Below, in pieces: positions 9,251-59,955 of a stretch of 64,000 bases of DNA. The DNA is taken from NCBI GenBank assembly GCA_001643675.2, contig LSRY02000022.1, positions 558,001 to 622,000 on the forward strand, read 5' to 3'. Within the stretch, counting starts at the first letter, position 1, and each line of letters opens with the position of its first letter. The stretch is from Monocercomonoides exilis PA203. Lineage: Eukaryota > Protista > Preaxostyla. The translations under genes were made by a program, and so were the position numbers. The notes below the pieces were generated by a model, which was not told the origin of the DNA, did not search any database, and saw only the letters and a program-made list of their open reading frames with translations.

Positions 9251-10077
9251 ATGTCTTTCTTTTTGTTTTTTTTAAGCTTTTTCTTGTGAATAAATACTAA
9301 GTCTTCTGTGATTGTAATTGTTATGAGAATTCTGTCTTCTTTTTATTCCTGTCAAAATCTTTATTATTATTATTATCCTTTCTTTCTTTCTTTCTTCTTT
9401 TTTTCTTCTTTCTTTCTTTCTGTATTAATTTTCGTTTTATTTCTCTTTTTCTATTTATTTCTTTTTCTCTTTTCTTTTCTTTTCTTTCTTTTTTAAAAAT
9501 CAAATCAATTATTGTTTTATTTTTTTCAATATGGGAAGAAATTTTTTAATTCATTAAAAAAATCATGTTTTGTTCCAAACTTATTCGGCACACATATCAC
9601 AATGTGTATAACATTATTGCACAAAAAAATATTTGAAATGGAATCCATAATTATAATTTATTAAAATATTTGAAAACAAGCGTGATATTTAAAGAAGTAA
9701 CAGAAAAAGACATGTGAAAGGTGTGATTATGATTTTTACCTTTGTATTTAAATGCGTTGAATGTGAATAGAAGTTTCATAGTATTGTCAATGCTACGGGC
9801 ACTGATTTCAAATGAACGGTAAATATTAACGCATAATTATTGTATCTGCTTTCGGATAACTTATACATACAAACGGAAAACTCTACGAGGACATTAAAAC
9901 AAAAAGATTTACGAATACAAAAAATTTTCAGGAAGGATTTTTCAGAAGAAGATATATAATTATCTGTTTGGAAATAATCACCTTTATTCCTTCGTCTTAT
10001 TGTTTCTCTTCATCATCTTTAACATTTTCATCATCAAAGCCAACACATCACCCAATTCATTCCTCCACCCTCTCCAA

Positions 10078-13000
10078 CTACAACACTTTAGCCACTATCA
10101 TCGTCTGCGACTTCGCCTTTGTTTCTTCTCTTCTGGCACACTTCTGCGCCCCTGTCACTTCTCCTATTTCTTCCTGCCTTCCATCGCTCTCTGAGATATC
10201 TGCCTTTGCTGAGGGCTCTTGTTCTTCACATCCTTGTTCAGAACTTCCTGCAAATGAATTTGTGGAGTATGTCTCGCTCCATTTAACAGATGAGAAAAAT
10301 GATACGACAATAATACTGCTGCTGATTACACTTGATGTTCCATTGTGCTGAATGGACTTGTGCTGTTTGCAGTGGGGAAGATGGCATTTCGGAAGAAGAA
10401 AGAGGAGGAGAAGGAGAAGGAGAAGATGGAGGAAGAGAATTTGAAATATCATCCGGAAGAAGAATGGAAGAATGATCGGGTAAAGACTCAACTGAAGGAA
10501 GAATAGAGGAAGGATCAGGAAGAGGGAGAGAAGAAGAAGAAGAAGAAGAAGAAGAAGAAGAAGATGATGATGATGATGATTGCTGAGCCAAATCAGACGG
10601 ATGCTTCACAATTGGGAAGAATGAGTCAGCAATAATTCTCATTGCTGCTATTTCGTTTGAGGCTTTCAACTTGCCATCGCTCCAAAATAGCGCATCAAGC
10701 ACAGCAACAGCAACCTGAGGAAACGAAGACACAGAAATGCTGATGAAAGCGAGGACGAGCGACTGCGTTGGCACATTCTGCAGGTAGTCGAAGAAGAAGA
10801 TGAGGTTGTGCAAAAGCGGACAGAAAAGATTAGCTTCGTGCAATGCGCGAATGAAAAGAGGATAAGCTGAACTGCATTCATAAAACAGAAGAAGCGTCGA
10901 ATCGATGTTGCATTTTCTTGCAAAATACTCTTTTCTGTTTGGGAATTCTTCTGTGTGTGTTGATTTTACACAATGCTTGAAAGCGCTGAGAGGAATGGAA
11001 TAAGAAGAGGAGGAAGAAGAGGAGGAAGAAGAGGAGGAAGAAGAAGAGGAGGAGAAATAAGAAGAATAAGAAGATGAAAGAGTCGAATAAAGACTTCTTT
11101 TTAACTTGGTAGATAAATAGACAGCTATTTTCTTAGCAAACACTGGAGAAGAGTGGGACAACACACTCAATCCATCCATCAGGCCTTTCACTGCATCCAA
11201 AGAAGAAGAAGAAGAAGAAGAACAATTGTTAATTTCAAGCAACCGAACAAGGCTTGTTTCCAATGCATTGCAGAAACTATCAGAAACAAGAGGATTTGAA
11301 GAAGAAGAAGAGGAAGAAGAAGAAGAAGATGCAGACGAAGAGGATGGCGCACTAGAAAGAGCCAAAGAAGTGTCTGGCAAATTAGTCTGGTTGATTGCAA
11401 TGCAGTTGACAATCCAAACATGCAAATGAGCCATTCCTTCAAAGATAACGCTGTTCGCATTCTGTTTTGCCTTAAACTTTGCACTTTCATCCACAACACA
11501 CCCAGTAAACACCTTCAAAAACGCTTCCGCATAAAACTCGTTCAGAATCACGTTCTGCAGATTGTCTGAGGCGAGCGAGGCAAACAAATCAGAAGTGGCA
11601 GAGTTGGCTGTCGGAGGAAGGACTGTAGCAAGAGATATGCACGGCACCAGGTCATGAGGGAGCTGGAGAACAGACACGTGTTCTGAGTGGAATGTTGGAT
11701 ATGCAGCTGTTGATGATAATGATGAGGAGGAGGAAGAGGAAGAAGAGGAAGAAGAAGAAGAAGAAGAAGAGGGTAAGTCGTCGATGCTGAGAAGCTCACT
11801 CTGCCAGATGGGACTGGCTCCACCACACTGGGCAGACATATTGAATGAGAAGGATCTGATGTACTCGATCTCGATTGACTGCTGAGAGGAATGTGATTGT
11901 GCAGATGAAGCAGAAGCAGATGATGATGATGATGAATCAGCTGTCACAGCTGAATTCGGTGTCAACAATGCAAAGTTCGTGAAAGTGATGAGCGGTGCAC
12001 CCATCTCCAGCCCTTGGTCAGACGGATCACTCGACACAATCAGCAGAGGCGAGTGGGAAAACCGTGCATTGATAAACAAGACAGCCTCAGGAGATATTCG
12101 CGTGCCTGTGAACTCTGCAAACTTCGGATCCATCACCCGCTCCTCCCTCGTCTCCAGAAGAGCCAGCCGGAACACCCTCGCCACGGCACCGCGCACAAGA
12201 GCGTGTGGTGAGTGCATCAGCAGCTGCAGTTAAGGTTCAGTGATGTCTCTGTCGCAGCAGATGGCTTCGGCTAATTCGTCGCTTTTGCGCACGTGGTGCG
12301 ACAGGGCAAAGAGGAAGGCGACACAAGAAGAATAAACATGTGATGATGATGATGATGATGATGAAGCAGATGAAGCAGATGAAGGAGTCTGAGATAAACT
12401 GCTTGAGAGATAACTCAGAAAATGATCAAGTGATATCAGACAGCACGGTAGAAGTCTGCTTTTGACATTTTGTTCACGTGAAGAAGAAGAAGAAGATGAT
12501 GATGAAGATGATGATGAAGATGATGATGATGAAGAAGATGCTAATGTAACTGTGCATGTAACAACAGATAAATACGCCTCCATCCACTTTTCATTCATCT
12601 CTCTGTTTTGTGTGCACAGCAACTCTTCTGACTTGAGAAGCAGCCAGTTAATCCCAATCTATGTCAAATGCTTCTCCAAAAGCAAAAGATATGACTTATG
12701 CTCAGCAACATCTCTACGAATGGAATAAAAACAGGTCAAAGCGAGAGAACAAAGAGAAGAAACGTGGCTGGGTTCTTTTGTTGAAGAAAAAAGAACATCA
12801 CAAAATGACTGCGAAATGATCGAATAAAATGCATCTTCTGGTGAAACTGGAATAGATGGAAGCGAAATTGCGGAAAAGGATGAATCCGAAGCAAAAAGAG
12901 GAGTCGGTTTCGTTCCTTTCAAAATCATTAGAATAGAACGAGATGCAGACGCAGACGGAGAAGGGGAATTATGCAGACAAGAAATGAGAGAGATCAGCAA

Positions 13001-58448: not shown

Positions 58449-59955
58449 TGACAAAAAATGAAAAATTAAATGTTTAATTAACGAATGCAAGGAAAAAACC
58501 AGTTAAACCATTTTCAAATCTGTTTGTATATTTTGAAACTCTTTCATTAGTGAATCTTTGTTTAAGATGATGGGTATTTACATGACTTTTTTGACTGAGA
58601 CACAAAAAGATCAACAAGTCACTGACTTGGAAATTCCCTAATTGTTGATCTGGTCATTTCCCATCATTAACAAAACATTCAAATAGATTTTTTTCTTTAA
58701 AGTTATGATTTGGATATTTGAAATTCATTCAAACGATATTAGTGAACAAATTTTCAAAATGAACGAAATATATTCCAAATTAAAAAAATATTGCTTTGAC
58801 TTAAAAAAATGAAAAAGTCAGTCAGAATCGTAATATTTATCATTCAAAGTCAGTAAGTCACAAAGGCTTAGAATCAACTTGTCTAGTGAAGTTGTCATTG
58901 AAAAACAAACATAATGCAAATTCTATTCCATTTTAAATATTTACAAAATGGGACATTATTTATGTTATCATTTTTTTCCAAAAAAATTATTCTGTTGTTG
59001 GAAATCACAAGATTTTTAATTATTTTTCCATCGTGCTCATGAATAAAAAATGAAATAAATTTATATGCGCGAAACACTTTGATTAATATCTTCTTTTTTG
59101 TTACAAAACCACAAAAGATCGAATTATTGTTTTGTATCACCATTTTTATTAAAAAAGGAGATTGAAACAATATTATTTGATTTATTGCTGTTCATTGTTA
59201 AGCTTATCTTAATACAATGATTTTCTAAAGAGAAATTACACATTTGGAACTATGTTTTGTTTTTGTATTCAAGCTAATTGTTGTAAGACAATAATCCAAT
59301 ATTTTTTTTTATTAAATCTCATACTTTGGAGTAATTGTTTTTGTTTAACAATAATCTTTCAAAACCAATGAAAATCTTTTTATATTTAAAAAAAAAGAAA
59401 ATGCAATATGCTTGATTTATTAAATAAGCTTGATTAATTGTTTTTCAAGTCTGTTTTTTGCCTGTCTTGAAATAAACGAGTGCAATTATGCATTCGTTGC
59501 ATGCCTATCGTAAATAACAAGACCAAATTTGTTGAACACCGTTTCACTATCGAAAAAAACACTCAGTAATTTTCAAAGTTAAGAGAAAAGTTTTTAAACA
59601 GATTACAATCAAATAAATTATGCAGTGATAAGTGAGCATGAAAGAAATACGAAGTATTTTCTATGGGATTCGATTGAATAAGATAATTTTATCGCTTTTA
59701 TTCATACGCATATAATTTGTTTTCCAAACGATCTGTTATAAACCATCTTTGTTAGAAATATAAATTCATTGTTGAAATTCACTTCAAATGTTTCATCACC
59801 TTCATTTTCCTGTTCCAAAATGCATTTAATCAAACTTTATTAAATAAGTTATAATATGATTAAGTTTATTTGAAAAAAAAAAAGAAAAATTGAAAGAAAT
59901 AGAGAAGGAGAAGAGGAATACTAAATTTGTCATAATTCGATTATAGTTCATTCAG

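Follow-up and report, generated by a model that had tools for sequence, protein, structure and literature searches.

Host-gene sequence carried within DNA transposons has been described in several lineages. In plants, the TIRs (terminal inverted repeats) of Pack-MULE and other Pack-TYPE elements enclose host-gene fragments, sometimes from more than one gene, which appear at new loci flanked by target-site duplications (TSDs), and such capture has been documented across superfamilies (Gisby and Catoni 2022, PMC8903248; Catoni et al. 2018, PMC6379663). Cargo situated beside a transposase gene is also already known: Dothideomycete fungi harbour a complete hAT element that carries histone H3 (Dhillon et al. 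2019, PMC6710886), and Sola2 elements carrying Fanzor have been reported (PMC3627910). Here, we describe a 64,000-nucleotide stretch of the genome of Monocercomonoides exilis (contig 17, positions 558001–622000; referred to below as the window), which holds three cut-and-paste DNA transposons, one of the Sola2 and two of the hAT superfamily, the latter termed hAT-A and hAT-B. We consider it likely that the Sola2 element and hAT-B are transduplicating elements that carry fragments of giant host genes, and that hAT-A is an ordinary non-autonomous family. Transduplication is a known process, met here in an unexplored lineage.

The M. exilis elements resemble each of the described systems in part. 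As in the fungal hAT, a transposase-bearing hAT appears to amplify transduplicated host coding sequence, with the copies inactivated and the candidate original intact. However, the fungal element took up a whole small gene and reached hundreds of copies, whereas hAT-B carries 2.6 kb from the interior of a giant gene together with an ATP-grasp fragment, is present in fewer than ten copies, shows decay that is not of the repeat-induced point mutation (RIP) type, and resides in a metamonad protist. The dictyostelid Sola2 elements (PMC3627910) are 10–15 kb long, have 12–22-bp TIRs and AWWT duplications, and combine a conserved transposase half with a second region that differs between families, all features with counterparts in the element described here. 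Their passenger, Fanzor1, is a TnpB-like protein of mobile elements, whereas the passenger in M. exilis is apparently a decaying fragment of a host ubiquitin-specific protease (USP) gene for which a candidate parent exists. In contrast to Pack-TYPE elements, which are by definition non-autonomous and usually hold short fragments, the cargo measures 2.6–5.9 kb and lies next to a transposase gene. Because both contain transposase genes, the Sola2 element and hAT-B fall outside the strict definition of Pack-TYPE elements. For M. exilis, the published genome paper puts repeats at 46%, with unclassified repeats making up 35% of the assembly and DNA transposons 4.5%, and describes no families. We searched this genome (82.3 Mb in 101 contigs, designated C1, C9 and so on; the window lies on C17) with a pattern for the hAT terminus, TARGCCTTTGYGAC, and one for the Sola2 terminus, GGGRMGAAATTTT, each set against a control pattern.

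The Sola2 DNA transposon spans 14.4 kb of the plus strand (9529–23955), as delimited by its TSD, its TIRs and the points at which homology to other copies ends. ATAT is present at 9529–9532 and again at 23952–23955, and the 13-bp TIRs at 9533–9545 (GGGAAGAAATTTT) and 23939–23951 (inverted GGGGCGAAATTTT) agree at 11 of 13 bases. The window has just two matches to the pattern, ATAT followed by GGGAAGAAATTTT at 9529–9545 and the inverted partner at 23939–23955, the chance expectation being 0.02, and homology to at least eight other genomic copies begins at window positions 9526–9531 and stops at 23953–23955. Genome-wide, the terminal motif, when flanked by 4 bp of A/T, was found at 617 sites compared with 91 for the control, the flanks being ATAT, ATTT, AAAT or AATT. 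Paired ends with matching duplications were seen with ATAT four times (C1, C11, C18 and the window), with ATTT twice (C16 and one element shorter than 200 bp) and with AAAT once (a second element of that size); ATTT and AAAT are non-palindromic. A 4-bp AWWT duplication and short, often imperfect TIRs within the 12–22-bp range are the marks of Sola2 elements (Bao and Jurka 2013, PMC3627910). On sequence grounds, the large element is thus a Sola2 transposon, its termini and AWWT duplications and, as judged by eye, its transposase motifs agreeing with those published, and what the preliminary description of this stretch had called a probable Sola2-like element can be named more firmly. At C18:184250–184416 and C26:933550–933735, two Sola2 termini are separated by only 167–186 bp and have AAAT or ATTT duplications that match; these pairs look like Sola2-derived miniature inverted-repeat transposable elements. 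Outward-facing Sola2 termini with identical 4-bp flanks were also observed 0.7–1.2 kb apart (C2:1582079/1583254, C19:702696/703368 and C27:1185731/1186766), possibly representing two adjacent elements or a rearranged one.

The Sola2 transposase gene (17900–22940, plus strand) was assigned from its translations, motifs and genomic matches. It encodes a lysine-rich N-terminus, followed by GC-rich tandem arrays (approximately 18190–21585) and a DDE core (21747–22739), and is covered by two long open reading frames (ORFs), 17900–20080 and 20070–22940, which lie in different frames. The arrays extend over approximately 3.4 kb, reach 65% GC, consist of units of about 27–66 bp and translate as peptide repeats. 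They are mostly missing from the copies on C70 and C25, and the copy on C18 has its own version. Genomic matches to the core number at least 121; many of them lie in open frames of 1000–1200 codons, and the C18 copy is 99% identical. Compared by eye with the sequences in the supplement of PMC3627910, there being no Pfam model, the core has the motifs CDN..HF(R/K) and HGK(N/S)ECD in common with Sola2_DFa-2 and Sola2_PPa-1, as well as a further 15-letter motif stretch that is identical in Sola2_DFa-2. The only database relatives of the core are two unnamed JGI metagenome proteins (L038, from 3300010163, and P0001), which are 54% identical to each other, P0001 being 41–45% identical to the window core; both probably come from other AT-rich protists. 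No terminus resembling that of the window element was found on the metagenomic relatives' contig.

The cargo of the Sola2 element is a 5.9-kb fragment of a giant USP gene (10519–16399, minus strand), which matches C41:108260–114147 collinearly over its 5.9 kb with 91% identity. The C41 locus, at which the USP domain lies within a 4660-codon open frame, is the candidate parent; like the other candidate parent described below and most of the Sola2 and ATP-grasp copies, it is known by its coordinates, identity and open-frame lengths. Neither the Sola2 terminal regions nor the transposase are among the genome matches listed there. More distant giant USP paralogues with 43–45% identity, among them C28:72530 and C64:147954, have open frames of 4383–4931 codons. 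In the window, the fragment keeps to a single minus-strand frame throughout, with eight in-frame stops and no frameshifts, and includes an open segment (14312–15493, minus strand) with the UCH/USP catalytic domain (PF00443, E = 2.1e-24). For comparison, a neutral sequence of approximately 2000 codons at about 9% divergence would be estimated to acquire some ten new stops. At least 11 Sola2 copies carry the USP fragment, and on C18, C70, C80, C11, C1, C25 and C29 it is linked to the transposase at a distance of 5–7 kb in divergent orientation. Most copies retain just the part equivalent to window 12479–16397, those on C9, C12, C16 and C7 retain approximately 940 bp and the copy on C27 none, and such graded retention is what a single capture with subsequent transposition and internal deletions would leave.

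A different explanation for the additional genes is that they are accessory genes of the elements themselves, needed for transposition, with the USP of Sola2 as chief candidate. The giant USP genes make up far less than 1% of the genome by a rough estimate, which makes a random draw unlikely, and the catalytic segment is still open over 398 codons in the window and 1165 codons on C18. However, beyond the eight stops of the window cargo, most element copies have one to five stops within the USP domain itself, and the Sola2 copies on C27, C9, C12 and C16 have little or no USP cargo. Furthermore, the cargo represents the interior of a far longer ORF and lies antisense to the transposase. The window USP picked up no USP fused to a transposase, its genome matches and those of the transposase coinciding at no loci outside this Sola2 subfamily. 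An accessory role is hence regarded as improbable.

hAT-B is an 8006-bp element on the minus strand (50857–58878 with its TSD; element proper 50865–58870). Its TIRs, TAAGCCTTTGTGAC, match at 14 of 14 positions, and the 8-bp TSD GAATCAAC is present on both sides. The terminus pattern has four exact matches in the window, which form two inward-facing pairs, one for each hAT; when mismatches are allowed, there are eight matches compared with 1.03 expected by chance. Genome-wide, the pattern was found at 138 sites against one for the control, most of them in inward-facing pairs 3.6–14.7 kb apart. The perfect TIRs and TSDs that the preliminary description had reported for two hATs were confirmed. 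Two sister copies of hAT-B, read from end to end, have 8-bp TSDs of their own, TTAAAAAT and GACTAAAC. The window element and its sisters accordingly have the 8-bp TSD and short TIRs of the hAT superfamily. hAT families whose transposases are only 31–34% identical keep almost the same 14-bp terminus.

The hAT transposase gene (55608–58259, minus strand) was assigned from its genomic relatives, Pfam and a profile match to Hermes. Both protein-level matches are weak: the product scores 18.9–20 bits against PF05699 (Dimer_Tnp_hAT), under the Pfam cut-off of 21.4, and a profile of 13 genomic relatives matches the catalytic region of the Hermes transposase with E = 7e-4. Open transposase frames of 908 codons are present in copies on C6, C9 and C8 (C8:1518597). 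A comparison of eight copies divides the element into a common core, consisting of 50865–51433 (569 bp) and 55481–58870 (3.4 kb, comprising the transposase and the right end), and a middle of approximately 4 kb that varies between copies. The middle of the C9 copy is the same as that of the window, the C6 copy is without approximately 1.5 kb of it, the copy at C8:223642 is without the ATP-grasp part and that at C8:1518597 is without nearly all of it, while the copies at C17:140227 and on C43 have different sequence in this position. No Pfam matches were found in the variable middles of the other copies, much of which is of low complexity.

The larger part of this middle in the window, 2.6 kb at 52840–55469 (minus strand), matches C39:582891–585593 with 87% identity and is interpreted as having been copied out of a giant host gene. 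One minus-strand frame runs from 55518 to 53113 with four internal stops. A 126-amino-acid stretch of the fragment has four genomic matches, namely three hAT-B copies and the locus on C39, where the match (87% identity in DNA and 90% in protein) lies within a 5845-codon open frame. No hAT terminus is found near this candidate parent among the genome-wide terminus sites listed. The cargo is present, wholly or in part, in the hAT-B copies on C9, C6 and C8, which have distinct flanks and TSDs. Judged by coordinates and open-frame lengths, the intact parents of the two fragments would thus lie outside the elements, with the C41 locus (4660 codons) and the C39 locus (5845 codons) as candidates. The mapping of each cargo to an intact parent gene that the preliminary description had proposed gives candidates for the USP and hAT-B giant-gene fragments (91% and 87% identity); none was found for the ATP-grasp piece or, with the one piece searched genome-wide, for hAT-A. 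The outcome that it had named as contrary to its proposal, that no other copy would carry cargo, was not what we observed, given at least 11 cargo-bearing Sola2 copies and the hAT-B copies on C9, C6 and C8.

The remainder of the hAT-B middle includes a broken fragment of an ATP-grasp (IQCH-like) family (51731–52805, plus strand; one frameshift and several stops), identified by tblastn with proteins of the family. This family has at least 182 genomic matches with 45–67% protein identity, and it is represented in the databases by short M. exilis proteins, annotated as 'hypothetical proteins', with matches to PF24923 (IQCH-like). PF24923 itself has at least 96 genomic matches, few of which are in long open frames (for instance, 1553 codons at C25:2069298–2070737). 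The idea in the preliminary description that such cargo could explain abundant pseudogenes and family expansion finds no support in this family, given that recognizable hAT-B elements hold only approximately seven of 150 listed ATP-grasp matches (at least 182 in all). In a rough tally, about eight ATP-grasp loci have a scored hAT transposase at a distance of 10 kb or less, compared with about two expected; more than 140 of the 150 listed have none, and an association of ATP-grasp sequences with other hAT families is suggestive only. The annotated protein P0023 (137 amino acids) is 100% identical to an ATP-grasp fragment in a hAT-B-type element at C17:141361–141771, from which it follows that at least some 'hypothetical protein' gene models are transposon cargo. 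An accessory function might also be sought in the ATP-grasp piece, as two hAT transposases only distantly related to each other are likewise followed, after approximately 2.5 kb, by a convergently oriented fragment of this family (C9:1437538 and C69:1684966). However, this layout is found at only two of about 25 loci in the group of hAT transposases with 36–42% identity, a group contained within 57 merged loci.

Two observations on ATP-grasp sequences are added here. At C9:1437538–1442669 and C69:1680261–1685196, an ATP-grasp fragment follows a hAT transposase by approximately 2.5 kb in convergent orientation, as in the window, and the two transposases are 38–39% identical to that of hAT-B; by their coordinates, these loci could reflect an old or repeated association of this hAT clade with the ATP-grasp family. 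In the window itself, a second ATP-grasp-related fragment (60081–60539; residues 248–304 of P0028, 75% identity) is situated 1.2 kb beyond the right end of hAT-B, with no obvious TIRs found around it.

hAT-A is a non-autonomous hAT of 4282 bp on the plus strand (40053–44350 with its 8-bp TSD; element 40061–44342). Its TIRs, TAGGCCTTTGCGAC, match at 14 of 14 positions, and the TSD ATGAAGAT is found at 40053–40060 and 44343–44350. Full-length copies with 98%, 96% and 80% identity are present in the genome, along with approximately 30 more with 65–71% identity over most of the length, and the last 130–320 bp of the element match the transposase-proximal end of autonomous hATs. The element is inserted in a decayed ORF resembling a Merlin transposase (39299–40060 and 44351–44620; motifs IGGEGK.EEIDE and ISDEW), which becomes continuous once hAT-A and one copy of the TSD are removed in silico. 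Beyond the TIRs, hAT-A and hAT-B have no similarity by blastn or tblastx, which rules out a second gene common to both. None of ten ORF pieces from the interior of hAT-A gave a credible Pfam match, and an 85-amino-acid piece, the only one searched genome-wide, matched element copies only, its stop-free matches lying in frames of no more than 112 codons. hAT-A belongs to an old family of non-autonomous hATs, and the presence of host cargo in it is unsupported rather than excluded.

It might be supposed that all the interiors are of this kind, that is, ordinary transposon sequence or nested repeats with a chance resemblance to genes, in which case the pattern of pseudogenes would reflect the decay of repeats. 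hAT-A fits this description, its interior being common to more than 30 copies and having neither a Pfam match nor a long-ORF relative, the variable middle of hAT-B is largely of low complexity without Pfam matches, and the genome paper assigns 35% of the genome to unclassified repeats. For the two cargo fragments, such an origin is nevertheless highly improbable: the USP fragment combines a match to Pfam UCH (E = 2e-24) with 5.9 kb of collinearity to a 4660-codon frame, and the hAT-B fragment has just four genomic matches, one of which is within a 5845-codon frame.

The preliminary description had placed decayed host-like genes inside all three elements and had proposed that multi-kb cargo travels alongside the transposase. 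Both statements hold for the Sola2 element (5.9 kb of USP sequence) and hAT-B (2.6 kb), and neither is supported for hAT-A, which has no transposase and in which no recognizably host-like sequence was found. A reading of hAT-A as a Pack-hAT with mixed cargo is unsupported, given that no Pfam match and no long-ORF parent were found for its interior, which is common to the whole family. The intact cyclin and leucine-rich-repeat (LRR) genes do lie outside the elements, as it had stated (ORFs 25653–26687 and 27851–28366, respectively). With only four genes, the contrast between the inside and the outside of the elements in this window is anecdotal.

What is seen in the Sola2 element and hAT-B corresponds to transduplication in that the host-gene fragments lie within TIR and TSD bounds (10519–16399 in 9533–23951; 52840–55469 in 50865–58870) and the same cargo occurs in several copies at different insertion sites. 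Hence, we hypothesize that this Sola2 subfamily descends from an element that acquired a copy of 5.9 kb from the central part of a giant USP gene, the C41 locus being the candidate parent, and that a hAT-B ancestor acquired a copy of 2.6 kb of a second giant gene, for which the candidate parent lies on C39, hAT-B also carrying the ATP-grasp piece. The copied DNA would have been placed between one terminal repeat and the transposase gene, a position in which it would be moved along by every later transposition. The fragments, which have no detectable function, would then gain stops at the neutral rate and be trimmed by internal deletions, with the result that sister elements would differ in how much of the cargo they retain, from the whole to nothing. 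As for the route of capture, ectopic repair or template switching at trinucleotide runs of the GAA/TCT type is likely, such runs, (GAA)n, (TCT)n or (AAG)n, being found at three of the four cargo edges.

The mode of decay was assessed in hAT-B. Differences between copies of its cargo are distributed over the three codon positions as 66/65/117 in raw counts, and masking of low-complexity codons removes the third-position excess (p = 0.11 and 0.82). On this basis, the hAT-B cargo was judged not to be under purifying selection, and the absence of codon-position bias after masking indicates that the fragment decays neutrally. Between copies, the cargo diverges by approximately 14% and the transposase region by approximately 10%. 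Hypermutation resembling RIP, which was considered as a source of stops without frameshifts, was rejected as well: the private substitutions of eight hAT-B copies show no excess of transitions, with transversions accounting for about half or more of them. Indels between cargo copies are mostly multiples of three and apparently fall in trinucleotide-repeat regions.

Several points weigh against the history proposed above. The C41 parent (91%) is no nearer to the window cargo than are other element copies (89–95%), and for this reason the direction of transfer and the number of captures are inferred rather than read from a rooted tree; a direction from gene to element, a single capture per fragment and the route of capture are all to be taken in this sense. 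The ORF of the Sola2 transposase is split by the repeat arrays, and that of hAT-B has an in-frame stop at 57954–57956 (glutamine in the C6 copy), such that both window copies may have lost their autonomy. For the ATP-grasp piece, no specific parent was found among the genome-wide matches. The cargo edges were taken from BLAST-type matches, which skip simple repeats, and their position in trinucleotide runs may be partly an artefact. Lastly, matches in four metatranscriptome runs of a single study are pieces of up to about 150 bases, mostly short and in or beside low-complexity runs, and provide no evidence of transcription.

The first of these points also bears on the possibility that the direction was reversed or that no capture took place, with the C41 and C39 genes representing exonised transposon sequence or the similarity arising by segmental duplication or gene conversion. 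Parent and element copies are about equidistant from the window USP copy in an unrooted comparison, and low-complexity trinucleotide runs at the cargo edges could favour ectopic conversion. However, the giant USP paralogues (43–45% identity, frames of 4383–4931 codons) show that this architecture belongs to a host family older than the element copies, the homologous stretches at C41 and C39 are collinear and embedded in very long open frames, neither locus has element termini or a transposase match listed, and the broken copies are those in the elements. A reversed or capture-free origin is thus very doubtful, and transduplication from host genes into the Sola2 element and hAT-B is the reading that we retain.

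If this holds, at least two transposon families move multi-kb pieces of host genes around the M. exilis genome, which bears on gene counts and gene-family analyses in a reference amitochondriate eukaryote and contributes examples from a metamonad and from Sola2 to the record of transduplication, which so far comes mostly from plants and fungi. Ends, target duplications and copy structure are now defined for a large Sola2 population (approximately 600 matches compared with 91 for the control) and two hAT families. Much more tentatively, it is conceivable, although on balance we doubt it, that gene capture is routine in M. exilis TIR transposons of several superfamilies and favours trinucleotide-rich giant genes through repeat-mediated template switching; routine capture would explain a considerable share of the 35% 'unclassified repeats' and of the orphan 'hypothetical protein' models. 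As a special case, the link between Sola2 and USP may be non-random, a deubiquitinase having been recruited more than once as helpful to Sola2.

Two further features were noted in the window. A DDE_1 (pogo/Tc1-like) transposase fragment is located on the minus strand at 572–1306, and an ORF of 1065 codons at 5733–8930 has a WASH-complex CCDC53 domain at its end.

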